The notes under the pieces: model-generated
Seen by the model: only the letters and a program-made list of their open reading frames with translations
The model's database searches: none
What the model was told of the DNA's origin: nothing
Sequence record: PQ309151.1
Strand: one strand, 5' to 3'
DNA: 64,000 bases
Shown: piece after piece, positions 17,898 through 55,916 of the stretch
Numbering within the stretch: position 1 is the stretch's first letter
Layout: every line of letters begins with the position of its first letter
Position numbers and translations under genes: made by a program

Positions 17898-18557
17898 ATG
17901 CTAGAGGCTAATCTTTTAAAAAAGAAAGCTGCCGTAGCCAGTAAGACTGTACTACTCATGTCCCTTAACGGAAGCCTGGTAGAGCAAACGGGAATTACTG
18001 GAATCAGTTCTGCTGGTGTTAGCTGGAAAACCAATCAGAAATTTGGAAATCAGGCAGCTTCTTTCTCATCGACAGGTAACATCCTCATTCCAACTCCAAC
18101 GAAGCTTCAGTTCGCTGGAGATTTCACGATTGAGATGTGGATGAGCATGTCCCAGCTGACCGGAGAACAGATGTTGTTCACGGCAGGGGCCGGTTGTTAT
18201 ATAGACTGCTATACTGGCGCCAGCTATAACGGCGGTAAACCATCGTTTCTCTGTTCGGTACGACCAACGAACGATCATACCGGATTGCTTATTTGCAATA
18301 ATGCCTTTACCGTAAATACGCTTCACCATCTGGCATTATGTCGGTATAACGGGACGTTGAGTCTTTATGCCGACGGCGCTTCGCTTGGATCCATCGCTAA
18401 CAGTCAGGTCTGGGGGAATGCGAACACATTGATCGGGAACTACGTCAGTTCGGTAATCTATGGTTTTGGTGGTGGAGTTCAGGAAGTTCGCATGTCCAAC
18501 ATCGCACGATATACCACTTCCTTTACACCACCTACTGGACCATTTGTTCTGGATTAA
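17898..18557 (+). CDS. LamG/concanavalin A-like lectin-domain protein (tail-associated)
   Basis: Motifs FAGDFTIEMW, LHHLALCRYNGTLSLYADG and VQEVRMSNIARYTTSFTPPTGPF. N-terminal MLEANLLKKK motif. Confidence 0.8.
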   Translation: MLEANLLKKKAAVASKTVLLMSLNGSLVEQTGITGISSAGVSWKTNQKFGNQAASFSSTGNILIPTPTKLQFAGDFTIEMWMSMSQLTGEQMLFTAGAGCYIDCYTGASYNGGKPSFLCSVRPTNDHTGLLICNNAFTVNTLHHLALCRYNGTLSLYADGASLGSIANSQVWGNANTLIGNYVSSVIYGFGGGVQEVRMSNIARYTTSFTPPTGPFVLD

Positions 18558-18560
18558 ATT

Positions 18561-19088
18561 ATGTCTCCTTATGCAAAAGTAGCTGGGGTCTGGAAACACG
18601 TCTCCCAGATATTCATCAAGCAAAGCGGTGTCTGGAAAACAGTCACGCAAGGCTATATCAAAAGTGGAGGAGTCTGGAAACTCTTCTACGTCCTTGGCCT
18701 TAGGCTCACGGCGACCAATTGGTTACTGAGTAGCCACAACTCCAGTTACGACTACGTCGAATGTTATCTGAGTGGGCTGAATATCGCGGATCATGGCGGT
18801 GTTCTCTACGACCTGTATATGTCACAGGACTATGACAGCAGCGACGAGAATCTGGTGGTGTCGTGGTCTTACCGGCTGATGTACGATAGCGGTCAACCCG
18901 CACCGAGTCTTACAGGTAATGTTAAGGTAACCAACCTAAGTACTGGGGTAGCTGTTACGTTACCGAATAGCGGCGATCCGAGAACGTTCTTTCTCCAGAT
19001 CACCAACGGAGCGGGTGGTTATCCCAACAATCCGAACGATGGTTGGATTCGTAGTGGCTCGGATTTATTCAAAATCGAACAAGCATAA
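18561..19088 (+). CDS. Tail-fibre-associated protein with N-terminal YxKxxGVWK repeats
   Basis: Three repeats: YAKVAGVWK, FIKQSGVWK and YIKSGGVWK. Confidence 0.6.
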   Translation: MSPYAKVAGVWKHVSQIFIKQSGVWKTVTQGYIKSGGVWKLFYVLGLRLTATNWLLSSHNSSYDYVECYLSGLNIADHGGVLYDLYMSQDYDSSDENLVVSWSYRLMYDSGQPAPSLTGNVKVTNLSTGVAVTLPNSGDPRTFFLQITNGAGGYPNNPNDGWIRSGSDLFKIEQA

Positions 19089-19095
19089 AGACATA

Positions 19096-19123
19096 GACTA
19101 CAGAGCCTTGCGGCTCTGTAGTC
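19096..19123. terminator. Bidirectional hairpin between convergent genes
   Basis: 12-bp stem GACTACAGAGCC / GGCTCTGTAGTC with a TTGC loop, flanked by CATA and TATG. Confidence 0.75.
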
Positions 19124-19129
19124 GTATGT

Positions 19130-22719: not shown

Positions 22720-23322
22720 ATGCTGGAGTTTTTCCTGGCTAAGAAGAAGAAAACTGGAGCCGCGCCTTTCATAGGCGCCAGTTCCTTTGATGGAGTTTCT
22801 AGTGCGTCTGTCGTAATGCCTGCGGGTGTTGCGGCAGGCGACTTTCTTCTCATGATCGCTGATGCGGTTGGAACGGTAACTGTTCCATCGGGCTGGACGA
22901 ATTTTAGCAATACGGGCTGGTCGTATAGCTACAATCGAAAACTGATGTACAAGATCGCTGGTGCGGGTGAGACTAATTTCACTCTAGGGCAATCTGGTGC
23001 TTATGAAATCATCGGCAGTATTCTTGCCTATCGAGGCCCGACTCAGATCGTTGCCTATTCAAATCAGGAATCAAGAACAACCTATACCTATCCGTCTCTA
23101 ACAGCTACATCGAGTGGATCGATATTGGTTACACATGCTACCGATAGAAGTCCGTCTATTCCGACGATCCCCGCTGGAGAAACATCCAGAGCGACCTATT
23201 TCGGAAGCTATTTTGGTTTCAGGGCATCTGATGAGGCCGTAAATAGCGGAGCGACTGGTACGCGAACTTCATCGGGTGGTAGTACTTACAACGGGTACTA
23301 TAGCGGGATCCTGATTGCCTAA
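22720..23322 (+). CDS. Putative tail-associated beta-sandwich protein
   Basis: N-terminal MLEFFLAKKKK motif and VMPAGVAAGDFLLM..VPSGWT, a pattern common in phage tail accessory proteins. Confidence 0.5.
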   Translation: MLEFFLAKKKKTGAAPFIGASSFDGVSSASVVMPAGVAAGDFLLMIADAVGTVTVPSGWTNFSNTGWSYSYNRKLMYKIAGAGETNFTLGQSGAYEIIGSILAYRGPTQIVAYSNQESRTTYTYPSLTATSSGSILVTHATDRSPSIPTIPAGETSRATYFGSYFGFRASDEAVNSGATGTRTSSGGSTYNGYYSGILIA

Positions 23323-24730: not shown

Positions 24731-26803
24731 ATGTCCGATCCCGTGACTAGCTATCCGTTTGACCCCACAGGGCAGGCGGCTAGCAACCGAATCGTGGATG
24801 AACAGATCGTCGTCCTCCCTCCGGGTGACCGACTGTTCCAGTTCGCCATGCCAGTCTTCTGTCCCTTCTTCGAAGAAGGACACTCGCTGAAGCTGCGTGA
24901 TATCAATAACAACGTCACACCATTAGTCTTGGGTGTGGACTATTACCTCAGTCACAAGTTCATGGATGCCTCCTTGGCTACCATGCACCCGATCTGGGGT
25001 TCGGTCAGTTTCCTAAAGCCGGTTAGCGGTGTGTTGCTGATGACGTACCAGACCCTTGGTGGTCCGTGGACGATCGATCAGGCGACGATTACCGAAATTC
25101 TGATGAACACCAGCCAGAACCCGCGTATCACGACGTGGGAACAGGTGGTGGAACGTCCTACGGATTTCCCGGTGATCGATCACCCGTGGAATCTGGACGA
25201 CATGGTCGGCATGTCGGAAATCTATGGCGTGCTGGAGAACTTCTACGAAGCCTATCTCGCATCCCTGGATCCGAATGGCGGTGGTGGCGGTTCCTCGATC
25301 ATCATCGACCACATCAACAACAAGAACAACCCTCACCAGGTGACGGCAGCCCAAACGGGTGCTTACAGCCAGCTCCAGATGAATACGATTCTGGGCGGCT
25401 ATCTCACCACGTCGGCTCAAGCGGCTGACTCTGCCAAGTTCAATGGCAAGACGTACGCTCAGATGCTGGCGGATGTTGTCAATACGAAGGTCAACGCAGC
25501 AGCTGCCGCGGATAACGCGACGCATGCAACGACGGCCGATACGGCTACGAATGCCAACGCACTTGGCACCAAGAGCCTGGCACAGTTGATGACCGACGTG
25601 GTGAACACGAAGGTTGCGAACGCTACTCACGCAGACAATGCCGATCACGCAACGGCTGCTGATTCGGCTACCAACTCGTCTCAGCTGGGTGGTCAGTCGC
25701 TGGCTCAGGTCCTTGCTGCTGCTCAGGCACAGAAAGCGGCGGACACGACGCTCTTCAACGGCAAGACCTATGCTCAGGCTACGGCAGACATTCTGACTGG
25801 TCAGGCAGCGGACTCCCAAAAGCTCGGTGGTCAAACGCTGACGCAGATCATCGCGACTCTCCAGCAATCGACCGGCGATGCTTCGACGCTGAATGGCAAG
25901 TCGTACGCTGACATCATGGCGGCAGTGAAGACCACCAAGGTCGACAATGCTACCAATGCGGATACGGCAGCCAATGCAAACTCGCTGGGCGGTCAGTCTC
26001 TCTCGCAGATTCTGGCTTCGGTGGCTTCGGTGGTTCCGGATCTGTCGCACAACTCGGAAGCTGTCTACGGCTATACGTTCGATCAGCTGGTGACGGCTAT
26101 CCAGCAAAGCAATACGTGGTCCAGCGGTCTCGACTATCTGTGCGTGGACCTGGACATCGAACATGCTACGCCGATCCATTCGAACAATGGTGGTACGGCA
26201 GACAACACGTACGAGTATCTGTTCATCGGTTCGTTCCCGATTCCGACGACTGGTTCGAGCAACCAGTACTACGATCCGACGGTGCGTCAGTATTCGTCTG
26301 TCATGGATCTGGAATTGTACATGGCGGGTCAGATCATCCGCATCGGTACGAACGTTCAGGTCAACGACGATCAATCGATTGCGCTGTCGCTCTACAGCAA
26401 TGCAGGTCCTTTGACCAACCTCGTGTCGGTCGGTACTCGCAATGACAACTCGACCCTGAAGTCCTCGGACAATTCCCAAACGGGTAAGTTCAAGGAAGTC
26501 TGGTTGCGTTTCAAGACGTCGTCGAACTTGCGTCGCCTGGGTATCTTCCAGTTCACCAAGAACGACTTCGTGCTCGATCCGTCGGAAACCGTTAGCCTTT
26601 ACGATTCGACCGACGTGCGTCTGAACACGGTGGTTTGGTCGCAGCCTGCGTACAATACCAACGAAAACACGCTGAATACGGCTATCGGAACCGAAGTTAC
26701 GAACCGTACGAACGCTGACTCCGCCATCCGCACGGACACCCAAGCAGCACTGGATGCCCTGGCAGATCAGATCAACTCTCTCACGGCTACTCCGGCAGCC
26801 TAA
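24731..26803 (+). CDS. Tail fibre protein with repetitive shaft
   Basis: N-terminal YPFDPTG..NRI..E anchor domain of the phiKZ-like fibre family, the NNPHQVTAAQ motif, and ADxA-rich shaft repeats. Confidence 0.75.
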   Translation: MSDPVTSYPFDPTGQAASNRIVDEQIVVLPPGDRLFQFAMPVFCPFFEEGHSLKLRDINNNVTPLVLGVDYYLSHKFMDASLATMHPIWGSVSFLKPVSGVLLMTYQTLGGPWTIDQATITEILMNTSQNPRITTWEQVVERPTDFPVIDHPWNLDDMVGMSEIYGVLENFYEAYLASLDPNGGGGGSSIIIDHINNKNNPHQVTAAQTGAYSQLQMNTILGGYLTTSAQAADSAKFNGKTYAQMLADVVNTKVNAAAAADNATHATTADTATNANALGTKSLAQLMTDVVNTKVANATHADNADHATAADSATNSSQLGGQSLAQVLAAAQAQKAADTTLFNGKTYAQATADILTGQAADSQKLGGQTLTQIIATLQQSTGDASTLNGKSYADIMAAVKTTKVDNATNADTAANANSLGGQSLSQILASVASVVPDLSHNSEAVYGYTFDQLVTAIQQSNTWSSGLDYLCVDLDIEHATPIHSNNGGTADNTYEYLFIGSFPIPTTGSSNQYYDPTVRQYSSVMDLELYMAGQIIRIGTNVQVNDDQSIALSLYSNAGPLTNLVSVGTRNDNSTLKSSDNSQTGKFKEVWLRFKTSSNLRRLGIFQFTKNDFVLDPSETVSLYDSTDVRLNTVVWSQPAYNTNENTLNTAIGTEVTNRTNADSAIRTDTQAALDALADQINSLTATPAA
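25424..26102 (+). repeat. About eight protein-level shaft repeats, alternating NGK[TS]Y and G[GT][QK][ST]L types
   Basis: In order: FNGKTYAQM, LGTKSLAQL, LGGQSLAQV, FNGKTYAQA, LGGQTLTQI, LNGKSYADI, LGGQSLSQI, VYGYTFDQL. Boundaries approximate. Confidence 0.8.
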
Positions 26804-26814: not shown

Positions 26815-27936
26815 ATGAGCGACGTTACGATTACTCCCGTCTCACATGTTTTCGACGAGACCGGCACTCTTGCCGAGAACTACGTCGAGAACGAACAACG
26901 AGATCTGGCACAGCGCAACATCCGCGCTGCATGCACGCGATACGGTGCTTTCTTCATCGAATCGTTCAAGATCCGGGATGCCAATGGCAACGCCCTGTTG
27001 GCAAACCAATACCAGTTCGGACTCTTCGCTGAAGACCTGTCCGAAAAGACTGGTAAGGAAATCGCTGGTGCGGTGATCATCACCGACCCGGCTGTGATTT
27101 CGCCTGTCTTCATTGACTATCAGTGTGTTGGTGGTCCGTGGGGTGCAACCAACGAGCAGATCATTGATCTGTTCACTGCGCTGATGACTGACGATCGTCC
27201 TGTGACGTGGCCGAACATTCTGGGTAAACCGGATGGCTTCAAGCCCGCTCACCACTTCCAGGACATCGGCGACCTGTTCGGTGCTGAATACATCGTCCAG
27301 GCTCTGGAGCGTTTGGGTAACGCGTACCTCATGGGCGACAATGCGTCGCACGATGAGATTCTGCGTAACATCGATCAGTTGCGTTCGGACATGAATCAGG
27401 GCTTGACTGACCTGAGCAATGCTCTGAAGGCTTACGCTGATGCAGGCGATGCAAAGGTTGAAGCAGACCTGAGCAACGAAGCCCAGCTTCGTGCAGCAGC
27501 AGACACCCAGCTGCAGAACAACATCAATTCGGAAGCGACGACACGCGGCAACGCGGATACGACGTTGCAGACGAACATCAACAACGAAGCGACTGCTCGT
27601 GCGAATGCCGTCACTGGCGTTCAGAACAACCTGAACTCGGAAATCACCGCTCGTCAGAATGGTGACTCCGCGCTCAATACGAGCATCACGAACGTGAACA
27701 ACGCACTGACGGCGCACACCTCGGCAACGGGTAACGTGCACAATCTGACTCCGGCTCAGCTGGGCGTTTACACGATCGCTCAGGTCGATGCGCTGATCAA
27801 CAGCGTCAACGCGAGCCTCGGCAACTACGTCAAGAAGAATGCCGGTGAAGATACGTCCGTTACCGTTAGCGGTGGCGTGATCTACATCTTCATGTCGGGC
27901 GCATGGCGTGCTGTGTGGCCGCCGCAGTGGCAGTAA
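26815..27936 (+). CDS. Tail fibre protein, paralog of 24731-26803, with a coiled-coil stalk
   Basis: Related N-terminus (FDETGTLAENYVENE..WPNILGKP..HH..D..G.EY), EAxxRxxADxxLQxNI repeats, GNVHNLTPAQ, and a C-terminal IYIFMSGAWR. Confidence 0.72.
   Translation: MSDVTITPVSHVFDETGTLAENYVENEQRDLAQRNIRAACTRYGAFFIESFKIRDANGNALLANQYQFGLFAEDLSEKTGKEIAGAVIITDPAVISPVFIDYQCVGGPWGATNEQIIDLFTALMTDDRPVTWPNILGKPDGFKPAHHFQDIGDLFGAEYIVQALERLGNAYLMGDNASHDEILRNIDQLRSDMNQGLTDLSNALKAYADAGDAKVEADLSNEAQLRAAADTQLQNNINSEATTRGNADTTLQTNINNEATARANAVTGVQNNLNSEITARQNGDSALNTSITNVNNALTAHTSATGNVHNLTPAQLGVYTIAQVDALINSVNASLGNYVKKNAGEDTSVTVSGGVIYIFMSGAWRAVWPPQWQ
27478..27687 (+). repeat. About four ~18-aa coiled-coil repeats (ExxxRxxADxxLQxNIxx)
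   Basis: EAQLRAAADTQLQNNINS, EATTRGNADTTLQTNINN, EATARANAVTGVQNNLNS, EITARQNGDSALNTSI. Confidence 0.8.
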
Positions 27937-27987: not shown

Positions 27988-28476
27988 ATGACTGTCGTCT
28001 TGAAAGATATCTCGTTGGATGATCTACATCTCGACGAGCTGTTGTTCCATCCGTATCCGTACGAACAGCAGATGGTGAAGTTCATCACTGCAGACGGTCG
28101 GCAACTTACTCCGTTCGATGCATCTGAAGTAGGCAAGATGCGTATGTTCGGTACGATCAAAATCGAAGGCATGGAAAAGATCTCGAAGAAGGTCTTTGAT
28201 GCCCTGAAGAAATTTTCTCATGATGGTCCGATGACCTGTCATGTTTTCATCGCAGCTGAGAATGCCCCCAGCTTTCCGGATCACACCGATCCGGACGGCG
28301 TATTGCTCTATGTCGTCGATGGTGTAAAAAACCTGATGATCGACGATCAGTTCCATACGCTTAACGCCGGTCAGTCGGTTTTCATTCCGGCTGGCACCAA
28401 ACACCGTGCCATCAATTATTCTTCTTCAATCATGATGAGCATTGGATTTGAAAAGTTCATTGTGGAGAAGCTCTAA
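27988..28476 (+). CDS. Cupin/JmjC-type (Cupin_4/RoxA-like) Fe(II)/2OG oxygenase
   Basis: SFPDHTD..VLLYVVDGVK and SVFIPAGTKHRA give an HxD...H facial triad. Confidence 0.78.
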   Translation: MTVVLKDISLDDLHLDELLFHPYPYEQQMVKFITADGRQLTPFDASEVGKMRMFGTIKIEGMEKISKKVFDALKKFSHDGPMTCHVFIAAENAPSFPDHTDPDGVLLYVVDGVKNLMIDDQFHTLNAGQSVFIPAGTKHRAINYSSSIMMSIGFEKFIVEKL

Positions 28477-29537
28477 TGCATCGCACCGTTTATATCAAGA
28501 CCACTGAAGCTTGCAATCTGAATTGCAAGCACTGCTTCACAGGTGGCAATAGTCCCAAGCGCACGTTTCTGGATATCGAAAAGACCATCGATTGGACTCG
28601 TCGCTTGTTCGAACACCTCGATTTCAATGACCACACGCATTTCGAATTGCATGGTGGCGAACCGTTCCTCCTGCCCGTCAAGCAGTTGAAGGAACTCACC
28701 AAGGGCATTCGTACGTGGGGTCCGGTCAAGCATTCGATTGGTGCGACCACGAATCTGGTTTACAAGTTGGACGATGAACTGCTCTGGTTCATCCGTAACG
28801 ATCTCGAAAGTATCGGCACGTCCTGGGATCCGGACATTCGCTTTGCTAACGAAAAGCAGAAGAATCTCTGGACCGACAACCTGAAGAAGGTCATCGATGT
28901 CGCCGACGTCACGCTGAATGTCAGCGTGTCACGCAAGCTGATCGAGATGAATGTGAGCGACCTGCTCATGTTCCTGAGGGATACGGGCTGTTATCGGGTT
29001 CAGTTCGAACGTATCACGACGAACGGCAATGCTCGCAAGAATCTGGCATTGTTCCCGACGAATGCAGAAATCAACGACTGGTATCTTCGCCTGCACAATG
29101 CAACTGAAAAGTTGAGCGCTCGCGGATGGTTCCATAACGCATCCCTGGAGGATGTGTATGCAAAATTCGAAAATGGCAATGCTTGCTCTGGCACGTTCTG
29201 TCGGAATTGCGAAGAGTCCATCTTTACGCTCAACGCGGACGGCAGCATTGGGGGTTGCGCCAATTCGGCGCCGGAGGAATCCTTTGGACACATCGATGAT
29301 GATATCGGAGAACTGTTCGATGCCTCCGGACGAATCGATAACATTGTTAAAGAGCGCATGCGCCACGAGCAGTGTTACGTTTGCCCTGTGGCCGCTTATT
29401 GCGGTGGTGATTGCCACCGACTGGCTTGGGAAGGTGATGTCTGTCCCGCCCCACGCCAACTGATGAAGAAGCTGGCAGGCTTGCCGCTGGAGGAGTCTGC
29501 CATCCGGAAACGATTTATTCCCATTGCGGCGGTTTAA
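28476..29537 (+). CDS. Radical SAM/SPASM peptide-maturase-like enzyme (#1)
   Basis: CNLNCKHC, HGGEP, and SPASM cysteines CSGTFCRNC..GC..CYVCPVAAYCGGDC..C. Confidence 0.92.
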   Translation: MHRTVYIKTTEACNLNCKHCFTGGNSPKRTFLDIEKTIDWTRRLFEHLDFNDHTHFELHGGEPFLLPVKQLKELTKGIRTWGPVKHSIGATTNLVYKLDDELLWFIRNDLESIGTSWDPDIRFANEKQKNLWTDNLKKVIDVADVTLNVSVSRKLIEMNVSDLLMFLRDTGCYRVQFERITTNGNARKNLALFPTNAEINDWYLRLHNATEKLSARGWFHNASLEDVYAKFENGNACSGTFCRNCEESIFTLNADGSIGGCANSAPEESFGHIDDDIGELFDASGRIDNIVKERMRHEQCYVCPVAAYCGGDCHRLAWEGDVCPAPRQLMKKLAGLPLEESAIRKRFIPIAAV

Positions 29538-29543
29538 GGAAAT

Positions 29544-30104
29544 ATGAGTACATATCGCACAGACGTCGACGCCGTAGCCCAGGCGTACGTACGTAACAAC
29601 GTGAACGGGGCGATCAACCCGTATCGCTCGGATTGGGCCCCGGGCTATGTCAACATGGGCATGATTGGCTGGATCTCCCAGGATCCGAACCAGTCGCATC
29701 CGTCGTGGAATGGCGAACTCAGTACCGCTGGCAACACGATGGTGACAAACCAGGTTCGCAATGCGATGATCGACCTGGGCAACTACTACGCGTGGATTGC
29801 CAAGGGTCATTACGGCCTGCAATCAACCAACCAGAGCGGTGCCAACTACCTGCAATACGAAGGCTACGGCTACTTCGTGTTCAATGGTGCGGCTCCGGGC
29901 GCTCAGGATCATGCGAACCGTGTGTCGGCAGATCTGAACACCGCTGGTACCATGAACGGGACGATCCGTTATCAGCAGCTGATCGATTTCTACAACTTCG
30001 CGTGGGGCATCATCTGGAATCGTAAGGACGACCTGCAAGTCGAACTCACGGTTTGCCATTCGTCGTGCCACACTTCGTGCCACGGCTCGCGCGGTCGTCG
30101 TTAA
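29544..30104 (+). CDS. Putative substrate/precursor protein with C-terminal (CHxS)3-RGRR core
   Basis: Ends in VCHSSCHTSCHGSRGRR*. The only Cys residues are in this tail. Lies directly downstream of rSAM/SPASM #1. Confidence 0.65.
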   Translation: MSTYRTDVDAVAQAYVRNNVNGAINPYRSDWAPGYVNMGMIGWISQDPNQSHPSWNGELSTAGNTMVTNQVRNAMIDLGNYYAWIAKGHYGLQSTNQSGANYLQYEGYGYFVFNGAAPGAQDHANRVSADLNTAGTMNGTIRYQQLIDFYNFAWGIIWNRKDDLQVELTVCHSSCHTSCHGSRGRR

Positions 30105-30114
30105 GGAGAAGAAC

Positions 30115-31185
30115 ATGATCAATCTGTTCGATCGTGTTTACATCAAACACGACAACGTACTCGCCCGTGCTGAAGGTCAGAAGAAGTTGATCATCAGCCC
30201 GAAGGTCAAAGAGATCGCCTATGTGACCGACAAGCTGCAACAGCAGCAAGCCGGCATCATGGGAACGTACGAGACGCTCTCGGATGCTCTCCATTACGTT
30301 GGTGGTCAGGACGCTTTCTGGGTCGGTCTGGCACAAGCCAAGGCAAAAGTCATCATCATCGCAGAGCGCGATGTCGTGGCTGAGTTGCTGATTCAATACT
30401 GGAAGGCGATCTTCAAGGACATCTCGTCCGAAGCAGCTTACCTTCTGTACCAGATCCAGATCAACAACGAAAACCTGCATGCTCACCGTCCGACGGAAAA
30501 GCGCGTGCGTCTGTTCTCGCCCAACACCACCGAAGCCGACATCGAACTGATGTCGAAGGAAGCGTTCGTCGCACTCTTCGACAAGTCGACACCGGCACTC
30601 ATCGACCTGTCTTCGGATATGGCGATGCGTTCGCTTCCTTTCGAATATCTACTGATGTCGTATCTGGCAGATCCGAGCGACGATAGCGTGAAGCGCGTGT
30701 TCTTCCAGAAGCTCGACGCAATCATGCGTTCCAACATCGTTGCCAAGCTGATCGGTGGACGTGAAGAACTCATGTTCGAATCGCACAACTACTATCTGCT
30801 GGAACCGGGCGAAGTCGAGCATCTGATCACCGATCCGATCGCCCACATGAAGGCCAGCGGCCATCTGGCATGGGTCATGGACGAAGCGTTCGTCTATGGC
30901 AATGAAGACGAGATTCTGAAGAAGTATTCGCTGGATCAGATCCGCTTCTTCTTCGAACAGATCAAGCGTCTGGTGCTGGAAGACGAATCGATCTTCGTCG
31001 CCATCGAATGCATCAAGAACAAGCAGTATGCCAAGCTGATCGAATACGACATCGGTGACCATCAAGGCAACTTCTTCGGCACTGGTGCGTTCGTGAACAA
31101 GATCAATGGTCTGTTGGTCTCGTTCTCGTATCAACTCAAGCGGATGGGCAACCTCAATCTGCTCAAGCAGTACGAACTGAAGTAA
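30115..31185 (+). CDS. Hypothetical protein of the rSAM cluster
   Basis: 356-aa ORF with an AAGGAG RBS and strongly biased codon usage. No recognised motif. Confidence 0.75.
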   Translation: MINLFDRVYIKHDNVLARAEGQKKLIISPKVKEIAYVTDKLQQQQAGIMGTYETLSDALHYVGGQDAFWVGLAQAKAKVIIIAERDVVAELLIQYWKAIFKDISSEAAYLLYQIQINNENLHAHRPTEKRVRLFSPNTTEADIELMSKEAFVALFDKSTPALIDLSSDMAMRSLPFEYLLMSYLADPSDDSVKRVFFQKLDAIMRSNIVAKLIGGREELMFESHNYYLLEPGEVEHLITDPIAHMKASGHLAWVMDEAFVYGNEDEILKKYSLDQIRFFFEQIKRLVLEDESIFVAIECIKNKQYAKLIEYDIGDHQGNFFGTGAFVNKINGLLVSFSYQLKRMGNLNLLKQYELK

Positions 31186-31191
31186 TGCGAC

Positions 31192-31232
31192 TACTACCTG
31201 ACTCCTTCGGGAGTTGGGTAGTATCTTTTTTT
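31192..31232 (+). terminator. Intrinsic terminator inside the rSAM cluster
   Basis: Stem TACTACCTGACTCC / GGAGTTGGGTAGTA with a C(UUCG)G loop followed by TCTTTTTTT. Confidence 0.85.
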
Positions 31233-31279
31233 CTATTGGTTACACTACTTTTTTGACCTATCCCACTGAGGAAAACGAA

Positions 31280-32629
31280 ATGAGTGAAGAGAAGAAAGGA
31301 ATTGAATTCGGCAAGGAATGGATTGGCGAACTGCCGATTCAGAAACTGATGCGCGAAGATGCTGAACGTCGGCACGCCGACGGTGAAGTGCATGAGCTCG
31401 GCGAAATGAAGAAGACGTACTTTCCGGCGTTGGGTAAACTCGTCGAAATGCCGGCCAAGAAGATGCCGGAAGCAATTCCGCCCTGGGAAGAACTCCCCAA
31501 CGAAGCAGCAAGCGATGACATGTCGGACGAAGGCCCTATCCAGTTCGCGCCTATCGAAAATGGGCCGGCGCAAGTCGGATTGGGAGTGAAAGCATTCTGC
31601 GACGAACTGCTCAACGGCACTAAACTGGACGCCACCCCTGCTGTGAAGGTGACGTCGGAAGTTCAATCGCCTGAAGAAGCCGCGCAGGGTTATTCCTGGA
31701 AACTGAACATCGAAGTCAAGGACGGCAAAGTGGCCAATACTGAAACGGTTCCGGCAGAAAATGTCGGCGATGGTTGGGGTGCAGAACTCCCGCCCGAACA
31801 GCAAACGCCGGAAGTCCAGACCGGCATCCCGGAAGACAAACTCGTCGAAGTCACGGTGCCGTTCCCCGCTGACAAGATTCGCATGTACTTCCAGGATAAG
31901 TCCCTCTTCTTCATCGCGAACTATAGCGAGTCGAAGCTGAAGGGTCAGGCGTTCCTCACGTATCTGTCGAACATCAACATCCCGTCGGATGTGAAGTTCA
32001 ATACGCCGATCAGCTACGAAGAGTACGCTGAAGTCATGAAGGCGTACATGGAACAGCCGGGCGTGATCAACTGCGCCGGTCTGCACGTCATGGCAGCTGA
32101 AATGCTGCTGGTGGCCAAGGGCTTGCCGTATGAGCGTTCGCCTTACGCTCTGCCGATCGACGAGAAAGTGATTCTCATGTTCATCGAGGAACACTACGAG
32201 TTGGTACAGAAGTGGCTGCACTTCATCGACTCGACGCAAGTGTTCGCGTTGCGTTCGATCAAGGCGCTGAACGATCACTACAAGCCGGAAGAAGTCTTCC
32301 CGGTTATCGAAGATCGCAGCTACGTGGGCTGGAATATCGCGCAGCTGTATCGCATTCCGGAATTCATCGCGGTGTACTTCTCGATCGAGAACGCGGAGTA
32401 CAAGCTGTCGTACTTCAAGGACCAGTATGAAGAGTACATGTTCAAGAACGAGACGCTCGCCAAGTACTTCTCGTCGCAGAACAACTTCGCTGCGTTGTAC
32501 TTCATGCACTACGCAACGGGTCTGTTCAAGCCCGAAGACATCAATCACGGCCTGTTCAAGATCGGCGTGTTCGACAAGGCAGGTCCGTACTACGTGGATC
32601 GACCGTATGAAGCTACCATTCAAGTCTGA
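31280..32629 (+). CDS. Hypothetical protein of the rSAM cluster (acidic, Pro-rich N-terminal half plus helical C-terminal domain)
   Basis: Start moved to the ATG at 31280 (GAGG RBS, after the terminator). Confidence 0.72.
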   Translation: MSEEKKGIEFGKEWIGELPIQKLMREDAERRHADGEVHELGEMKKTYFPALGKLVEMPAKKMPEAIPPWEELPNEAASDDMSDEGPIQFAPIENGPAQVGLGVKAFCDELLNGTKLDATPAVKVTSEVQSPEEAAQGYSWKLNIEVKDGKVANTETVPAENVGDGWGAELPPEQQTPEVQTGIPEDKLVEVTVPFPADKIRMYFQDKSLFFIANYSESKLKGQAFLTYLSNINIPSDVKFNTPISYEEYAEVMKAYMEQPGVINCAGLHVMAAEMLLVAKGLPYERSPYALPIDEKVILMFIEEHYELVQKWLHFIDSTQVFALRSIKALNDHYKPEEVFPVIEDRSYVGWNIAQLYRIPEFIAVYFSIENAEYKLSYFKDQYEEYMFKNETLAKYFSSQNNFAALYFMHYATGLFKPEDINHGLFKIGVFDKAGPYYVDRPYEATIQV

Positions 32630-41319: not shown

Positions 41320-41351
41320 TCCTATAGTGTCCGACTAACTAGGGGATTATT

Positions 41352-41752: not shown

Positions 41753-42442
41753 TCAACCACCACCGCTATACCAGTTATTCTCGAAAATGAAGCAAGGTAC
41801 TGCAATTGCTGCATTCGGGTCACCTGTACCTGTCCCAGCTGCTCCGGACGGATAGGTAACACCGTTATTGGCTTCAACGAAAGGCGCTGAACCCACTTTA
41901 CCAAGCAGCAGATATGCGCTTCGATACGCAAAGTTGGCGTTCCCGTAAATACCGGAAGTTCCACCAACACGATAGACCGCAGAAGGCAGGCTGTTACGAA
42001 GACGACCGCCATACGGTTCATCGAAGCTTACCAGGGCGAACAACTGTCCTGTAGGCATTGCATTCAGATCGTTCGTTAATGCATCGATCTGACCACTGAC
42101 TGGTGGCTGAGTGTTGTCTTTCAGGTACGCATCTTCACCGAAGACGTCATACTGTCTGGAGAATGTCATGTTGCCGTACTTGTCGAACTGGATCAGGTTA
42201 TAACTGCGACCTGCCGATTCTAATTGTACGCCATTTCTCCAAACGCCTTTATTGGCCGAAGGATAGAGTGTTTGGGAAAGACCCAATGCATAGATCGCGA
42301 AGTTCTGACGACCAAATGTCTGTTTCCAGACACCGCCTTGTTTGACGTAGACTGAGTTGACACGTTTCCATGCCCCCGCTACTTTGTAATAGATCTGCGC
42401 GGCGTGATGCCATGCCGCAGATGCTTTTGCGTAGATTGTCAT
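41753..42442 (-). CDS. Tail-associated protein: YxKxxGxWK repeats plus an ILEI/PANDER (GG-type lectin) domain
   Basis: N-terminal YAKASAAWH, YYKVAGAWK and YVKQGGVWK. Then GRSYNLIQF..YDVF..L...LNAMPTGQLFALVSFDE..YRSAYLLLGKVG. Confidence 0.7.
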   Translation of the reverse strand: MTIYAKASAAWHHAAQIYYKVAGAWKRVNSVYVKQGGVWKQTFGRQNFAIYALGLSQTLYPSANKGVWRNGVQLESAGRSYNLIQFDKYGNMTFSRQYDVFGEDAYLKDNTQPPVSGQIDALTNDLNAMPTGQLFALVSFDEPYGGRLRNSLPSAVYRVGGTSGIYGNANFAYRSAYLLLGKVGSAPFVEANNGVTYPSGAAGTGTGDPNAAIAVPCFIFENNWYSGGG

Positions 42443-42443
42443 G

Positions 42444-43172
42444 TTAGTTTGGATAGCTACCGGTCGATGGTGTAAATGCAGACGTATACAAGCACGTGCT
42501 GTACATTCTCAGACGATCAATGTAACCGTTAAAGCCCGCATAAGTCGAACCAGAAAGCCGACTATCATTATAGCCAGCAATATTCAGATTACCGCCATAA
42601 CCCACCGTGCCCAGTGCTGCGGTTGACGAAGCACCCAATGCTCCGTTCACAAACAGGTATGCCGTAGAGCCACTGCGTCCAAGTGCAAAGTGATTCCAGG
42701 CGTTATTCGTGACCGCAATGCTACTTGTGAAGAATGCCGTATCAGTGGTGCCGCTCGGAACCCGTAGTGCCAGCTTCAAGTTATCGAGATGCCAGCGCCA
42801 GAGCCCTCCGGTAGCTTGGAATGACCCATACGACAGGATCGTGTTATAGCCACCTGTAAAGGTCACATTGCCTTGACCCAAACAGTAGCCCCAAGCTTCG
42901 AACCAGAAGTCTCCGGCAAAAGTCAGATCAGCAGTTCTTGCTGTAGCGAGATACACGCTGGCTCCAGCCGCTACCTGCGACTGCAAAAGACTTTGTGTTC
43001 CGTTTTTAAATTGTGCCGTTGATTGCGTAAGACTACCACCACCGCCAACCTGATTAATGGAGCGGGTTGGGACTACCAGATCTTTATATCCAGTAGTATC
43101 GAAATCCATTGCCAATGCCAGACCAGGAACACCGACAACTTTTTTATTCATTAACAATGCAGAGTCAAGCAT
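42444..43172 (-). CDS. LamG/concanavalin A-like lectin-domain protein
   Basis: FAGDFWFEAW, WNHFALGRSGSTAYLFVNG and GYIDRLRM..CLYTSAFTP. N-terminal MLDSALLMNKK. Confidence 0.8.
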   Translation of the reverse strand: MLDSALLMNKKVVGVPGLALAMDFDTTGYKDLVVPTRSINQVGGGGSLTQSTAQFKNGTQSLLQSQVAAGASVYLATARTADLTFAGDFWFEAWGYCLGQGNVTFTGGYNTILSYGSFQATGGLWRWHLDNLKLALRVPSGTTDTAFFTSSIAVTNNAWNHFALGRSGSTAYLFVNGALGASSTAALGTVGYGGNLNIAGYNDSRLSGSTYAGFNGYIDRLRMYSTCLYTSAFTPSTGSYPN

Positions 43173-43239
43173 GATGTTCTCGGGTAAAAGATCATAAAAT
43201 CTTGTGACATCAGATACAATTCTTCCCTAAGGTTTCGGT

Positions 43240-43965
43240 ATGCTAGCACCAATGCTTCTCAAGAAGAAAGCCCTTGGTATCAATACGGTTCTTCTTCTCA
43301 AATTCACTGGCGGTAAAGTAACCGATATAAGCGGGCGACATCAACCCGTCGTCGTCGGTTCTCCGTCTTACAGTACAAACACAACGAAATTCGGTACTTC
43401 TTTCCTTCCTACGGCAGCAGGGCAGCGGATTTCCATTACCGACAACCTCTCAGATTTTCTGTTTACGCCAAATCAGGCGTTTACTTTCGAGTTGTGGGCA
43501 CGTTTCAATAGCTGGCCGCCTTTTGGAGGCGGAAGCGTCAACCCGATCTTCTCCATGTTTAACTCAACCAGTCCGGGTTCGACCGGTGGTTGGCGATATG
43601 GAATACAGTACAGTAGCTCGGGTAACGCAACGATTTATAACCAGTCGCTTGCAGCGCAATCCATTTACGCTAGTTCGGCCGATGCTACTGCTTACTGGCA
43701 GCATCTGGCTTTGTGTCGCGATACGAACAATAACTTCGCATACTACATCAATGGTTGTGTGCGTGGTACCACTCCACCATACAGCAATAACGCTACCTGG
43801 ATTGCAGATATCCTGGAGATTGGTGGTAGCGTGGCTCTGCCTGGTGTTTGTAACGCATTCATTGAAGAGGTTCGCGTGAGTCGTGTAAGACGCTATACCG
43901 GATCGAATACCAGTGCAGAATGGACGAACTTCTCAGCACCTGGTCCATTTAACACGGTGGATTAG
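43240..43965 (+). CDS. LamG/concanavalin A-like lectin-domain protein
   Basis: FTFELWARF, WQHLALCRD..YYING and IEEVRVSRVRRY. N-terminal MLAPMLLKKK. Confidence 0.8.
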   Translation: MLAPMLLKKKALGINTVLLLKFTGGKVTDISGRHQPVVVGSPSYSTNTTKFGTSFLPTAAGQRISITDNLSDFLFTPNQAFTFELWARFNSWPPFGGGSVNPIFSMFNSTSPGSTGGWRYGIQYSSSGNATIYNQSLAAQSIYASSADATAYWQHLALCRDTNNNFAYYINGCVRGTTPPYSNNATWIADILEIGGSVALPGVCNAFIEEVRVSRVRRYTGSNTSAEWTNFSAPGPFNTVD

Positions 43966-43967
43966 CT

Positions 43968-44438
43968 ATGCTGGAATCACTTTTACTCAAGAAGAAAGTC
44001 TCTGGTAGCGCTGGACCTTACCGTTATGTCAGGCTGAACAATCTTCTGCCACCATCTGGCACCAGCTACGTCATGATTGTTGAAATTCAGATCATCGACA
44101 CGGCATCAGCAACAAACTGGTGTCGACAATCTGGGGCAGTAGCGTCTGCCAGTAGCTCTTATACCGGACAGACACCCAATCAGGCTATCGACGGCGTCAT
44201 TAGCACTGCTCCAGGCAACCGATGGACAGCCAATGGTAGTCCTGCATGGTTCATGGTGGACATGGGACAGCCTAGGACTTTTGATTCGATTCAGATAGCG
44301 GCAATGACTGGCTATAATCAGGATCCCGTGAAGTTCACTATCCAGGGCAGTACGGACGGTACGAATTTCACTGATCTTAAGACGGTTAACCGTGGCCTTT
44401 ATCCAGATAACGTTCTTACAGAGGTATACAAGACATGA
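43968..44438 (+). CDS. F5/8 type C (discoidin, CBM32-like) domain protein
   Basis: ASASSSY..NQAIDG..W..WFMVDMG and FTIQGSTDGTNFTD. N-terminal MLESLLLKKK. Confidence 0.8.
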   Translation: MLESLLLKKKVSGSAGPYRYVRLNNLLPPSGTSYVMIVEIQIIDTASATNWCRQSGAVASASSSYTGQTPNQAIDGVISTAPGNRWTANGSPAWFMVDMGQPRTFDSIQIAAMTGYNQDPVKFTIQGSTDGTNFTDLKTVNRGLYPDNVLTEVYKT

Positions 44439-54900: not shown

Positions 54901-54999
54901 GATGAAACAACTGATGATTCATCGGGTTCGAACGATAATTCTGGATCTAGCGATGCAAACGCTAATCCGGATGAAAACAACGACGAAGAAGAGTCGTAA
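51964..54999 (+). CDS. Portal protein (phiKZ gp129-like) with acidic Gly/Asp/Ser C-terminal tail
   Basis: 1011-aa ORF with G.SLLDD.R..TSMR.ML and GRTKVTVKLDEDDPD, resembling T4 gp20/phiKZ portals. Context fits. Confidence 0.7.
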   Translation: MSSSVKIVENVTNVSNGKKLPVLEFVRTHKPLAAAISKATPSTERVTRDGQGNRKVSSPDYASMISVHRTISRRNKDAKMTFQMLPDLKLAMEMVISLIMSPKDMFSDEVLILSDSSELLPASLMSSMLQTTTDYFKKNHNLTEFIEHMLVETLGLQGALPVAVIPENALDDLINNYNTNLSLEKFATEFDVERNIPHPLGMLGVPDYLTPRKNNTQPVSGRMKFGSKVSFDLQSFETYRSMNSSKPTSANSGIMLSKLFHDKVEDKDKDKPWTFKVPEGMSAKPGAEGDGNEINADNLMFVTDNISILKLPGMKEKARSQRVHEVLKQRGYNKFQASLESMTLALSKKQKEIIKKDAADQGRTLADTEVESLIFKNRRFAHTPVAALRTNGNLKRNSIGEAMIKEFDTACFIPVSVEGDPTRKLGGFIMLDEDGYPLTTHNADPEEIVDLSTYAGGSGNFVSSMNDRSNSIMNGKQTEGVSQWMLKKFFNRAFGEMVEKDLIDRVKNGQYDNGVQLASNEDFYWLMFTRCMKGQRTHLLWLPNEFLVYFAMDYDENGFGKSLLDDIRNITSMRIMLMVSGIAASLRNSIGRTKVTVKLDEDDPDAEKSIEDIQDEILKSRMNPIPFGINNVADISKYLQRSCYEFEISGSSAIPDMQVQFEQYNSQYPKPDEDLVNQLKELSIHHFGLTKDMIDAAEGVDFAIQAATNNLMTMKRVQRWQRKVEPLASEYIRKVALASESQIDQLRELVKNNFEQLQVEKVKRYFDLKDDSLMKDEDFKKLVTEQCLNVFLNNLKVELPSPAATTLAAQKEQFEDAAAFYKDAIDYIINESFFDTSVMGEEMNGHVDMIKNIILSHYMREYMAKNAILPELSDLTTIGEDGKIAINVMDSLEQHIKALGMSTGNFFKRFKQFAQLQTALMQGVGESSTTGETDTGGGGGGGDSGGDSFGGGGSDDFGLGGDDDSGLGSPDDGTGTSDEDETTDDSSGSNDNSGSSDANANPDENNDEEES

Positions 55000-55015
55000 T
55001 AAACGAAAGCAAATT

Positions 55016-55045
55016 CCACTGAGGGCTTCGGCCCTCAGTGGTTTT
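55016..55045 (+). terminator. Intrinsic terminator after the portal gene
   Basis: 11-bp stem CCACTGAGGGC / GCCCTCAGTGG with a UUCG loop and TTTT. Confidence 0.82.
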
Positions 55046-55082
55046 ATGCCGAAATCCTGTGATAACAGATACGGGCTTTGCT

Positions 55083-55916
55083 ATGATTGAATCATTTTTG
55101 ATGAGAAAGTCGATAATTTCTCGCGGCAGTGCGATATTCACAACGCCTGGTACGTACGACTTTGTTGTTCCGGCTGGCGTTACCTTGTTGTGTGGTGTTG
55201 GTATTGGCGCAGGCGGCGGTGGGTGGCAAAATACAATTGGTGGAACTAGCACCTGGGGTTCTTCTGGAGGCGGTGGTGGCCTTGGATGGAAGAACGCTAT
55301 TCCTGTTACTCCAGGCGAACATCTGATCGTAGTAGTTGGTGCTCTAGGCATTACTGGAGTAGGGAGTGCCATTGGCACGAATGGCGGCGACACATATCTA
55401 GCGCGCGGCTCGACAAAACTTTTTGCAGGCTATGGTGGTCTTTGTGGCGGTGATACAGGCTCCAATACAGCATATGGTAAAGGCGGGGGTTTCTTAGGAG
55501 ACGGCGGAGGTAACGGAGGTAACGGAGTTAACTTCGATTATGCTGCTGCGGGCGGTGGTGGTGCAGGCGGTTATTCTGGTAATGGTGGTAACGGAACAGA
55601 CATCAGTGCTCCTGCTGCGGCACCTGCTGGAGGCGGTGGTTCCGGAGGTCGGGGCGGTACGAACTATACCGACAATGGTAATGCTGGTCGTGGTGGCGGT
55701 ACAGGTTTGTTTGGTCAGGCATCTTCCGGCTTGGCGCAAGCTACTCGGTGGGGTAATGGTCTACCGGGTTCTCAAATTACGGGAGGTGGTGAATTTGGAG
55801 CAGGTTCATCTTCTTCACGAATCGTGACACCAAACACACCTGGTCTTGCGGGTGGCCTGAGAATGATTTGGGGTAAAAACCGTGCGTACCCTACAATCGA
55901 TTGCGGTGCCGACTGA
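55083..55916 (+). CDS. Glycine-rich tail-associated protein
   Basis: Start at the ATG at 55083 (MIESFLMRK). FTTPGTYDFVVPAGVT..G.GAGGGG, VTPGE and GGLRMIWG.NRAYP are typical of Gly-rich phage tail domains. Confidence 0.7.
   Translation: MIESFLMRKSIISRGSAIFTTPGTYDFVVPAGVTLLCGVGIGAGGGGWQNTIGGTSTWGSSGGGGGLGWKNAIPVTPGEHLIVVVGALGITGVGSAIGTNGGDTYLARGSTKLFAGYGGLCGGDTGSNTAYGKGGGFLGDGGGNGGNGVNFDYAAAGGGGAGGYSGNGGNGTDISAPAAAPAGGGGSGGRGGTNYTDNGNAGRGGGTGLFGQASSGLAQATRWGNGLPGSQITGGGEFGAGSSSSRIVTPNTPGLAGGLRMIWGKNRAYPTIDCGAD

Follow-up and report, generated by a model that had tools for sequence, protein, structure and literature searches.

Fourteen genes of Ralstonia phage RsoM3USA begin with a common peptide, M-x-E-x-x-L-L-K-K-K, and the reading that we modestly favour is that this tag is a docking peptide, which would attach swappable adhesin heads to the virus particle. 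The window, the whole 64,000-nucleotide stretch of DNA analysed here, corresponds to bases 1–64000 of the genome of this phiKZ-like jumbo phage (PQ309151.1) and contains six of the tagged genes (Table 1), which are referred to below by their start positions. A preliminary description of the window had proposed a tag shared by these six; all six starts and N-terminal peptides coincide with annotated CDS of PQ309151.1, and the tag is real, but the family is larger, with eight members outside the window. Position-specific scoring covered the entire 225.6-kb genome and took in all 5,480 possible starts followed by an open reading frame of 80 aa or more. The 14 tagged starts score 10.9–28.5 and the next best scores 2.4, so that no other gene comes near and the tag is not common on unrelated genes. 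The family is spread across 165 kb and both strands. Among the 14 proteins, identity across different head families is 60% at residues 1–10 versus 10% at residues 11–40, in agreement with the earlier remark that the sequences are unrelated or only fold-related past the tag.

Table 1. Tagged genes of RsoM3USA with their companion genes, promoter-like elements and hairpins
Feature	Position	Strand	Details
Tagged gene	17898..18557	+	219 aa; tag MLEANLLKKK (17898-17927); head LamG_3 (ConA-like)
Tagged gene	22720..23322	+	200 aa; tag MLEFFLAKKK(K); head without recognisable family
Tagged gene	42444..43172	-	242 aa; tag MLDSALLMNKK, one residue longer; head LamG_3
Tagged gene	43240..43965	+	241 aa; tag MLAPMLLKKK; head LamG_3
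Tagged gene	43968..44438	+	156 aa; tag MLESLLLKKK; head F5/8 type C (discoidin)
Tagged gene	55083..55916	+	277 aa; tag MIESFLMRKS; head probably TNF-like + glycine-rich, PF21722 family
Tagged cluster outside window	starts 137029, 137614, 138196, 138793	-	
Tagged cluster outside window	starts 180302, 180909, 181580, 182175	-	
Companion gene	18561..19088	+	175 aa; directly after tagged LamG gene 17898
Companion gene	41753..42442	-	229 aa; directly after tagged LamG gene 43172(-)
Promoter-like element	17869..17879	+	GATCTTGTGAC; 18 nt upstream of 17898 start
Two overlapping divergent promoter-like elements	43191..43208	both	inside 67-nt spacer
Promoter-like element for 43240	43198-43208	+	
Promoter-like element for 43172(-)	43201-43191	-	
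Promoter-like element	55053..55063	+	AATCCTGTGAT; 19 nt upstream of 55083 start
Hairpin	17840..17869		13-bp stem; upstream of 17898 cassette
Hairpin	19096..19123		12-bp stem; closes two-gene cassette 17898-19088
Hairpin	55016..55041		11-bp stem, then TTTTATGCCG; upstream of 55083
Hairpin	55927..55954		12-bp stem, then TTTTATGCCG again; downstream of 55916

Leucine in the tag is encoded by CTA, CTG, CTT, TTA or TTG, and lysine by AAA or AAG. Because these codons differ among the tags, the constraint acts on the peptide; judged from this variation, the tag is conserved through selection at the protein level. Leu6 is present in all 14 members and Leu7 in 12 of them, and residue 2 is bulky in every case (L, I, H, F or Q). 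Methionine aminopeptidase leaves the initiator methionine in place when the second residue is bulky, so the tagged proteins probably retain it. As noted previously, the annotation leaves the shared peptide unexplained: the genes are called ‘hypothetical’ or, in the case of some paralogs beyond the window, wrongly named ‘thymidylate kinase’. A comparison of the back-translated tag with IMG/VR returned at least 111 single matches, nearly all of them out-of-frame, internal or in AT-rich short ORFs.

The heads in the window had been described as lectins or glycine-rich proteins, and most of these labels stand. Laminin_G_3 (PF13385; gathering cut-off 27.6 bits) is matched by 17898 (51.4 bits), 43172(-) (47.1 bits) and 43240 (45.2 bits), and F5_F8_type_C (PF00754; cut-off 28.2 bits) by 43968 (54.9 bits); the lectin label of 22720, however, is unproven. 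A direct Pfam scan of 55083 named no family, but most of its homologues carry PF21722, which together with the AF2 model upholds the glycine-rich label and points to a TNF-like plus glycine-rich fibre-tip fold. Over all 14 members, the heads comprise LamG, SPRY, F5/8C and TNF-like plus glycine-rich domains and three with no assignable fold. They are 156–277 aa long and mostly single-domain, and no match to a β-helix or depolymerase family was found among them. Several have PHROG relatives labelled as virion, baseplate or tail proteins. The role of the heads as carbohydrate-binding modules is putative and is suggested by their domain families only.

AF2 models of the LamG and glycine-rich proteins place the first strand of the domain at about residues 15–21. 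In the 17898 model, residues 1–20 have pLDDT values below 50 and are followed by a β-sandwich; within this segment, residues 3–7 form a short helix with pLDDT of about 31–35. The 55083 model has a pLDDT of 88.7, and its tag is a coil. The tag is thus predicted to extend flexibly from the head domain without packing against it. Fold matches to 17898 in the PDB are carbohydrate-binding ConA-like domains. Among PDB folds, the 55083 model best matches the Bxb1 tail tip and the Pam3 fibre, with a probability of 1.00 and TM-scores of only 0.34–0.48. Profiles of the LamG and glycine-rich families, compared with PDB sequences, identified no solved relative from a phage particle; the glycine-rich profile found nothing, and no phiKZ chain was matched by the profile of the tagged LamG family.

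Several tagged genes lie beside structural genes. Gene 22720 is directly downstream of a gp164-like baseplate spike gene, and 55083 comes after the portal gene. Gene 43968 overlaps the start of the endolysin gene. By PDB sequence search, the neighbours of the tagged genes are homologues of phiKZ gp157, gp164, gp128 and gp129, which in phiKZ are an outer baseplate protein, the spike, a wedge protein and the portal, respectively. The two companion genes share a different N-terminus, M-x-x-Y-A-K...G-x-W-K, and repeats were noted for the one at 18561..19088.

The tagged genes also share an upstream element. Only seven ORFs in the genome have the 10-mer AT[CTA][CT]T[GA]TGA[CT] at a distance of 18–31 nt upstream. 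Six of the seven are tagged, and these six are the tagged transcription units that possess an upstream spacer of their own. The 10-mer resembles the late promoters of phiKZ, which are of the TATG type (PMC4666361). Because the tagged genes were themselves the source of the motif and it was not found upstream of other structural genes, late expression of the tagged units is something that we infer from this resemblance. The overlapping divergent arrangement in the 67-nt spacer is also present in phage SURPRISE13, where the 10-mer is kept, and TATG variants of it occur in FLC1-1B and pEa_SNUABM_37. The proposal that tagged genes are bounded by hairpins holds for the 17898-19088 cassette and for 55083-55916; none was seen at the others. 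Their suggested AT-richness is evident at third codon positions, where GC3 of the six tagged genes is 0.36–0.48 (0.45) versus 0.62 ± 0.06 in 64 other window genes (p = 6e-8), but total GC differs weakly (0.493 versus 0.513).

The search of relatives extends the motif to other jumbo phages. FLC1-1B, pEa_SNUABM_37, PhiEaH1 and Cronobacter phage CR3, as well as metagenomic relatives, carry the core M-L-E-x-x-L-L too, again on heads of the LamG-like, F5/8C and glycine-rich types. The KKK part is kept only in the RSL2-like clade; elsewhere GGK, GKPN, STYKKP or HAP takes its place, with a Gly/Pro-rich linker directly behind the core in other clades, and the Leu-Leu and Glu residues persist in distant clades that lack the Lys run. 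Among small single-domain relatives of 43968 in a library of 1.8 billion proteins, most carry the same type of N-terminus; the contigs encoding distant tagged F5/8C relatives are only 1–3 kb long, too short for gene context. SURPRISE13 has the same tag and promoter at the same loci with different heads. Homologues of 22720 were found by tblastn among relatives only in FLC4-5C, FLC6 and FLC8, and none of 55083 or 43968 in RSL2 or RSF1. Sequence comparison between close relatives thus indicates that the head repertoire turns over at fixed loci. A related-locus search with 17898 and 55083 gave only distant LamG matches or none.

A whole-genome scan of phiKZ revealed neither the tag nor an M-L-E-x-x-L-L start, and the tag is absent from the first 50 kb of Goslar; the structures of these two solved chimallivirus virions are therefore not transferable to the tagged proteins. 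CR3, which has one tagged homologue, is not a chimallivirus, so a chimallivirus-specific socket cannot be the whole story. A literature search on the virion proteomics of RSL2, RSF1, FLC6, SURPRISE13, PhiEaH1, CR3, PBES 02 and RsoM3USA found no data on tagged proteins, and the FLC6 and SURPRISE13 papers report no virion mass spectrometry.

Short docking peptides have a precedent in smaller phages. In KP34-, KP32-, K1-5- and SP6-type phages, the attachment of secondary receptor-binding proteins depends on N-terminal peptides of 7–29 residues, among them the heptapeptide MALxxLV of KP34virus, a 29-mer in KP32virus and 7- and 11-mers in K1E, K1-5 and SP6 (PMC6872550), and an N-terminal docking-peptide interaction has been validated experimentally (PMC13352976). 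As in these systems, otherwise unrelated, exchangeable proteins of RsoM3USA keep a very short common peptide at their N-terminal end, and like the KP34-type peptides the tag is hydrophobic and follows M-x-x-x-x-L-[LV]. The heads differ, being large trimeric tailspikes or depolymerases, one to few per phage, in the small phages, and 14 small lectin-like proteins in RsoM3USA. The distal parts of docking-peptide receptor-binding proteins are receptor-binding or depolymerase tailspikes built as trimeric β-helices, unlike the LamG, SPRY, F5/8C and glycine-rich heads described here. Gene order differs as well: the KP34, KP32, SP6 and K1-5 genes adjoin the gene for an anchor with a T4-gp10-like domain, whereas in RsoM3USA, a jumbo phage of the chimallivirus type, the genes are dispersed in units with their own promoter-like element.

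Modular attachment is also seen closer to RsoM3USA. In phiKZ, gp131, gp133, gp134 and gp135 are fibre paralogs with a shared N-terminal module and different distal domains (PMC13250141). They belong to the same virus lineage and likewise combine a common N-terminal attachment part with varied distal domains, but their shared part is a whole domain plus the helix of a six-helix bundle, compared with only about 10 residues in RsoM3USA. Host recognition by the Pam3 fibre is the task of its TNF-like/glycine-rich domains, and its docking to the baseplate that of a separate element at the N-terminus (PMC9608196). The 55083 head resembles Pam3 gp24 and S16 gp38 in its probable TNF-like plus glycine-rich architecture (PMC9608196; PDB 7ypx, 7yfw). 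In Pam3 and S16 the distal domain is the host-binding part and is attached through its own N-terminal element; the attachment element is a long helical bundle in Pam3, three short helices in gp38 and the 10-residue tag in 55083. The DUF7941 ‘fibre cloud’ proteins of Goslar and other chimalliviruses are a device specific to chimalliviruses, in which a common N-terminal module suspends domains that bind carbohydrates from the baseplate (bioRxiv 10.64898/2026.04.21.720040). The Goslar DUF7941 proteins gp22 and gp23 flank the endolysin gene, the slot occupied by tagged genes 42444-44438 in RsoM3USA. Unlike the tag, DUF7941 combines a globular domain with a linker that polymerises head to tail; gp22 and gp23 have no tag start, and a Pfam scan of window proteins near the tagged genes found no DUF7941.

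Other roles for the peptide have to be weighed against docking. Peripheral membrane anchors typically have a hydrophobic segment with a KKK stretch behind it, and the tag, which resembles them if Met-Leu-Glu...Leu-Leu is read as an amphipathic turn ahead of the polybasic part, could be an intracellular sorting or membrane signal that directs the heads to a membrane, the early-infection vesicle, the phage nucleus or the assembly site, where they would act inside the cell, for instance against host defences. Accessory counter-defence genes, too, are marked by rapid turnover, unusual codon usage and a patchy distribution, and SPRY and LamG domains can bind proteins besides sugars. We consider such a signal improbable: the polybasic part is not kept outside the RSL2-like clade, the glycine-rich head best matches a fibre-tip fold known in solved virions, and the tagged genes adjoin baseplate and portal genes and bear TATG-like elements. 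Quite improbable, too, is an oligomerisation handle, in which amphipathic N-termini would bundle homo- or heteromerically into multivalent lectin clusters, virion-borne or not. The helix predicted at residues 3–7 of the LamG protein fits this idea, and so does phiKZ, where N-terminal segments and a six-helix bundle join fibre paralogs that bear different heads (PMC13250141); the tagged homologue in the non-chimallivirus CR3 favours a partner-independent function. A conserved stretch of seven residues, or about two turns of helix, is nevertheless very short for a stable bundle, the pLDDT of the predicted helix is low, and in other clades a Gly/Pro-rich linker begins right behind the core.

In T4, unrelated cargo proteins begin with a common capsid-targeting sequence of about 10 residues; the prohead protease removes it, and the cargo is then located inside the head. 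The RsoM3USA tag has this length, position and distribution over unrelated proteins, and the phage encodes a head maturation protease, so that the tag might be a propeptide of the T4 internal-protein type that loads the prohead and is then cut off. The site of the phiKZ-type protease is Ser/Ala/Gly-x-Glu, however, and [S/A/G]-x-E is absent from residues 1–40 of all 14 proteins; their heads are extracellular-type lectin or fibre-tip domains, and phiKZ, for all its packaged internal proteins, lacks the tag. Capsid targeting is accordingly very unlikely. We give almost no credence to conservation at the level of nucleic acid or translation, in which an A-rich unstructured start, a slippery site or a recombination arm is maintained and the peptide has no role. 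Codons 8–10 are A-rich (AAA/AAG runs), three tags contain an in-frame A-AAA-AAG, and the shared upstream element means that the 5′ ends could be one cassette. Against this, synonymous positions vary freely, the heptamer is confined to those 3 of the 14 tags, Leu-Leu and Glu outlast the Lys run in distant clades, and nucleotide identity between tags is too low for a recombination arm. Codon variation rules out the frameshift-heptamer and translation-ramp ideas, and the nucleic-acid reading as a whole is largely refuted.

What argues for docking is the combination of peptide-level conservation, a flexible tag, binding-type heads, baseplate and portal neighbours, late-promoter-like elements, head turnover and precedent elsewhere. 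The earlier proposal of a docking peptide with interchangeable heads is thus partly supported, and all of its points that the analysis covered agree with it, but Pfam, PHROG and PDB sequence searches found no socket or T4-gp10-like branching domain, a type of domain that usually needs profile–profile or fold comparison, in the neighbouring structural proteins. In the mechanism that we propose, the first seven residues, M-[L/Q/H/F/I]-E-x-x-L-L, would form a short hydrophobic docking peptide, joined to the head by a flexible linker that is basic (KKK in the RsoM3USA clade) or rich in Gly/Pro. The phage places this same peptide on 14 small, mostly single-domain putative binding heads, and each tagged gene or small operon probably has its own TATG-like promoter for late expression. 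One type of socket on the particle would receive the peptide, most plausibly at the baseplate periphery or in the fibres, and the shared attachment chemistry would allow heads to be gained, lost or exchanged while the particle stays unchanged.

A broader version of the docking reading, which we regard as doubtful, is that heptapeptide and socket constitute a plug-in standard used across several clades of jumbo phages. One multi-copy site would then accept a dozen or more monomeric heads, virions would carry mixed, combinatorial adhesin coats, and new heads would be captured by acquiring seven codons and a TATG promoter. If such a standard exists, it would add to the chimalliviruses a mode of recognising host surfaces that has not been described for them, and it would explain the codon signature and private promoter of the tagged genes.

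Host recognition by nucleus-forming jumbo phages is poorly understood, and the attachment modules of the solved phiKZ and Goslar virions are different ones. Should the tag prove to be a docking peptide, it would provide a compact, sequence-only rule for finding the adhesin repertoires of jumbo phages that infect the plant pathogens Ralstonia, Burkholderia and Erwinia, and 14 genes per genome that are now ‘hypothetical’ or mislabelled would form a coherent functional class. It would also point to a private promoter and codon class that mark these genes as an exchangeable module. Docking by short peptides, as in small podophages, would then also work with many small lectin heads in giant phages.

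Fourteen proteins of Ralstonia phage RsoM3USA begin with the same N-terminal peptide, or tag, of the form M-x-E-x-x-L-L-K-K-K. The six N-termini in the window read exactly as the preliminary description gave them, and each coincides with an annotated start codon. A position-specific score built from the tags was run on the entire record, in five pieces (L001–L005), at each of the 5,480 ATG, GTG or TTG starts that open at least 80 codons in any of the six frames. Fourteen starts score between 10.9 and 28.5, versus 2.4 for the next best. The eight tagged genes outside the window form two minus-strand clusters. By this genome-wide score nothing tag-like occurs on any other of the roughly 230 genes; the motif is therefore not equally common on unrelated genes, the case that the preliminary description had named as speaking against it. 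Between proteins of different families, identity is 60% over residues 1–10 versus 10% over residues 11–40.

M1 and L6 are invariant (14/14 each), followed by L7 (12/14), E3 (10/14) and L2 (7/14), and the lysine columns K8, K9 and K10 are occupied in 9, 13 and 12 of the 14 proteins, respectively. Residue 2 is always bulky and never small. Methionine aminopeptidase leaves the initiator Met in place before a bulky second residue, and the Met of the tagged proteins should therefore be retained, where it may form part of the hydrophobic motif. The predicted models of a LamG and the glycine-rich protein both show the tag as a low-confidence extension that is not packed against the domain, forming a short helix at residues 3–7 in the former versus coil in the latter; the first β-strand starts at about residue 15–21 in both.

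Positions of tagged genes, upstream 10-mer sites and neighbouring phiKZ homologues in the RsoM3USA record
Position	Strand	Feature	Basis or remark
17898		Tagged gene, Laminin_G_3 head	Pfam
22720		Tagged gene	
43172	-	Tagged gene, Laminin_G_3 head	Pfam
43240		Tagged gene, Laminin_G_3 head	Pfam
43968		Tagged gene, F5/8 type C head	Pfam
55083		Tagged gene, glycine-rich head	
137029	-	Tagged gene, outside cluster 1	Tag score
137614	-	Tagged gene, outside cluster 1; SPRY head, above cut-off	Tag score
138196	-	Tagged gene, outside cluster 1; SPRY match below cut-off	Tag score; mutual paralog of 137614, 138793 and 180909
138793	-	Tagged gene, outside cluster 1; SPRY head, above cut-off	Tag score
180302	-	Tagged gene, outside cluster 2	Tag score
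180909	-	Tagged gene, outside cluster 2; SPRY head, above cut-off	Tag score
181580	-	Tagged gene, outside cluster 2; LamG match just below cut-off	Tag score
182175	-	Tagged gene, outside cluster 2	Tag score
17869-17879		10-mer site	Window
43191-43208		10-mer site	Window
55053-55063		10-mer site	Window
Upstream of 138793	-	10-mer site	L003
Upstream of 182175	-	10-mer site	L004
Upstream of 100675	-	10-mer site	
1755		gp182 homologue	PDB sequence search
15894		phiKZ gp157 homologue (outer peripheral baseplate)	PDB sequence search, E = 7.5e-58
21707		gp164 spike homologue	PDB sequence search; tagged gene 22720 starts 12 nt after
49769	-	gp128 wedge homologue	PDB sequence search
51964		gp129 portal homologue	PDB sequence search; then tagged gene 55083

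The remainder of each tagged protein, here called the head, is of several kinds. The 180302 protein matches phrog_6011 (‘virion structural protein’) over its full length, N-terminus included, and 55083 is placed in glycine-rich family PF21722 via its homologues. An AlphaFold2 model of 55083, built on 35 sequences (mean pLDDT 88.7), finds its best solved-structure matches in two tail tip chains of mycobacteriophage Bxb1 and a cyanophage Pam3 fibre, with the ALK/LTK glycine-rich domain ranking after these. The LamG model (pLDDT 68.6) is a generic ConA-like sandwich, nearest to carbohydrate-binding modules. The label ‘lectin’ thus fits most heads but not all, because Pfam and PHROG searches assign no family to 22720, 137029 or 182175.

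Among the genes considered here none is broken; only the annotation of some genes outside the window is irregular. The annotated start of ACEO27_00155 (record 137033–137614, minus strand; L003 37033–37614) is at 137542 and misses the tag, which begins at 137614. Together with its neighbour ACEO27_00156 (L003 37618–38196, minus strand), the gene is labelled ‘thymidylate kinase’, although both are SPRY-domain paralogs. The tagged 217-aa ORF with the full-length phrog_6011 match (record 179649–180302, minus strand; L004 29649–30302) is unannotated, and a short opposite-strand ORF (180015–180272) is annotated in its place.

The tagged genes are a compositionally separate class, marked by a GC3 of 0.36–0.53 (all 14) versus 0.62 ± 0.06 for 64 other window genes (Mann–Whitney p = 6e-8 for the six tagged window genes). 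Genes neighbouring the outside clusters have values of 0.60–0.74. The tagged genes may be recent imports, or expressed at low levels or fast evolving. All six tagged transcription units with their own upstream spacer carry AT[CTA][CT]T[GA]TGA[CT] 18–31 nt before the start; it is the specificity of this 10-mer rather than its presence that is informative, because the motif was derived from the tagged genes themselves. Genome-wide, the same position is occupied at one other ORF, a HAD-like (hydrolase) gene at 100675 on the minus strand, giving seven ORFs in total. The element also precedes tagged genes in Burkholderia phage SURPRISE13, and those of FLC1-1B and pEa_SNUABM_37 have CTATGT or TTATGT variants, often behind a hairpin and TTTATGC. 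In phiKZ, TATG is the defining sequence of late promoters, and transcription starts at its G (PMC4666361). The 10-mer would appear to define a related, private class of promoter, and this resemblance makes late expression of the tagged genes plausible.

Strong hairpins flank the cassette at 17898–19088 and the gene at 55083–55916. Within 55016–55051 and 55927–55964 lie two similar hairpins, each followed by an identical TTTTATGCCG, and together they bracket the glycine-rich gene in cassette-like fashion; its SURPRISE13 orthologue has the same hairpin and TTTTATGCCG upstream.

The window is identical to bases 1–64000 of PQ309151.1 (225,638 bp), and the coordinates coincide. Genes for a PhuZ tubulin, a head maturation protease and split multisubunit RNA polymerases mark RsoM3USA as a phiKZ-like jumbo phage; its closest relatives (~80–84% nucleotide identity) are RSL2, RSF1, the FLC4/FLC6/FLC8 phages and SURPRISE13. 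The endolysin locus of SURPRISE13 holds four tagged genes whose heads differ in part from those of RsoM3USA (323 aa unknown, two F5/8C, 171 aa unknown), and its portal locus has the glycine-rich gene plus an additional 225-aa LamG-like gene. Searches with tblastn find 22720 homologues in three close relatives only, no homologue of 55083 or 43968 in RSL2 or RSF1, and a match to 180302 in SURPRISE13 as the only close relative (26% identity).

Distant jumbo phages retain the core, the first seven residues of the tag (M-x-E-x-x-L-L), with the lysine run swapped for Gly, Pro or Lys linkers. Core-bearing genes occur in FLC1-1B (at least five, one joining LamG and F5/8C heads), pEa_SNUABM_37 (three), PhiEaH1 (two; this phage encodes a nuclear shell protein) and Cronobacter phage CR3 (Vequintavirinae; one). 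Among the closest metagenomic relatives of 55083, about a dozen start with the same core, as do eight of 10 relatives of LamG protein 17898 and ~12 of 17 small single-domain relatives of F5/8C protein 43968; large multidomain relatives generally start without it. One metagenomic contig preserves the order ligase, tagged glycine-rich gene, portal, wedge and DUF7208. No tagged gene was found in a whole-genome scan of phiKZ or in the first 50 kb of Goslar. The presence of a homologue in CR3 shows that tag and head can move together into an unrelated phage, which implies either that the accepting site is widespread or that the tag works without a lineage-specific partner.

The tagged trio at 42444–44438 adjoins the endolysin gene, a slot that in Goslar is occupied by the DUF7941 fibre proteins gp22 and gp23 (bioRxiv 10.64898/2026.04.21.720040). 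Directly 3′ of a tagged LamG gene in each case, the genes at 18561–19088 (plus strand) and 41753–42442 (minus strand) share a second N-terminus, in which M-x-x-Y-A-K leads into G-x-W-K-type repeats; with the LamG genes they make up a two-gene cassette present in duplicate. The two genes belong to function-unknown PHROG families 25859 and 36019, and SURPRISE13 has additional genes with this repeat start. The adjacent structural genes at 24731–26803 and 26815–27936 have a common N-terminal domain of ~175 residues (phrog_2163, 13857, 28376) and differ downstream, resembling the phiKZ gp131–135 arrangement; a PDB sequence search returned no match for either. The long plus-strand block at 28476–41699, kept across the RSL2-like clade, could specify a pathway that modifies nucleotides or DNA; among its products are three radical-SAM proteins, two 2OG-Fe(II) oxygenases and two DHFR-like proteins. 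The cupin gene found there in FLC6/SURPRISE13 is without annotation in RsoM3USA. For the product of 50–1678 (‘tail fiber protein’ in the annotation), a segment of class I chitinase (GH19) and a weak match to phage tail lysozyme make a virion-associated hydrolase of the cell wall the likelier identity.

On balance, sequence and analogy favour the tag as a docking peptide that carries adhesin heads, as the preliminary description had proposed; from this we infer incorporation into the virion and a socket there that accepts the tag. The seven-residue hydrophobic core would dock, and the flexible linker would join it to the head. This is the simplest account because the core lies at the extreme N-terminus, is selected as a peptide and is kept across clades, and because the loci, beside baseplate genes, stay fixed while the unrelated binding heads of extracellular type that they carry turn over. 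Sequence searches of the neighbouring structural proteins (Pfam, PHROG, PDB) identified no branching domain. The tag might instead direct sorting within the cell or to a membrane, which we consider unlikely. Its use as an oligomerisation handle is similarly doubtful. That it is a propeptide targeting the capsid seems very improbable.

The in-frame heptamer A-AAA-AAG, a classical slippery sequence, occurs in three of the 14 tags (17898, 137614, 180302) and was judged an incidental by-product of Leu-Lys-Lys coding. Codons for Leu (CTA, CTG, CTT, TTA, TTG) and Lys (AAA, AAG) vary among the tags, indicating that selection acts on the peptide, and a signal at the nucleic-acid level is the hardest of these alternatives to credit. 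A remaining share of the probability is given to none of the readings named.

Short N-terminal docking peptides are already established in phages. Secondary receptor-binding proteins of the KP34, KP32, K1E, K1-5 and SP6 types attach by N-terminal peptides that are conserved and 7 to 29 residues long, the heptapeptide of KP34viruses being MALxxLV (PMC6872550), and the interaction of peptide with branching domain has been validated (PMC13352976). The S16 adhesin gp38 is attached to the fibre tip by three short N-terminal helices (PMC9608196). The same attachment problem is solved in phiKZ by a whole shared N-terminal domain (gp131 and gp133–135; PMC13250141) and in Goslar by the DUF7941 module (bioRxiv 10.64898/2026.04.21.720040). 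RsoM3USA differs from these systems in scale and in the type of cargo: it has 14 small, probably monomeric heads dispersed over the genome, with a codon signature and a putative promoter class of their own.
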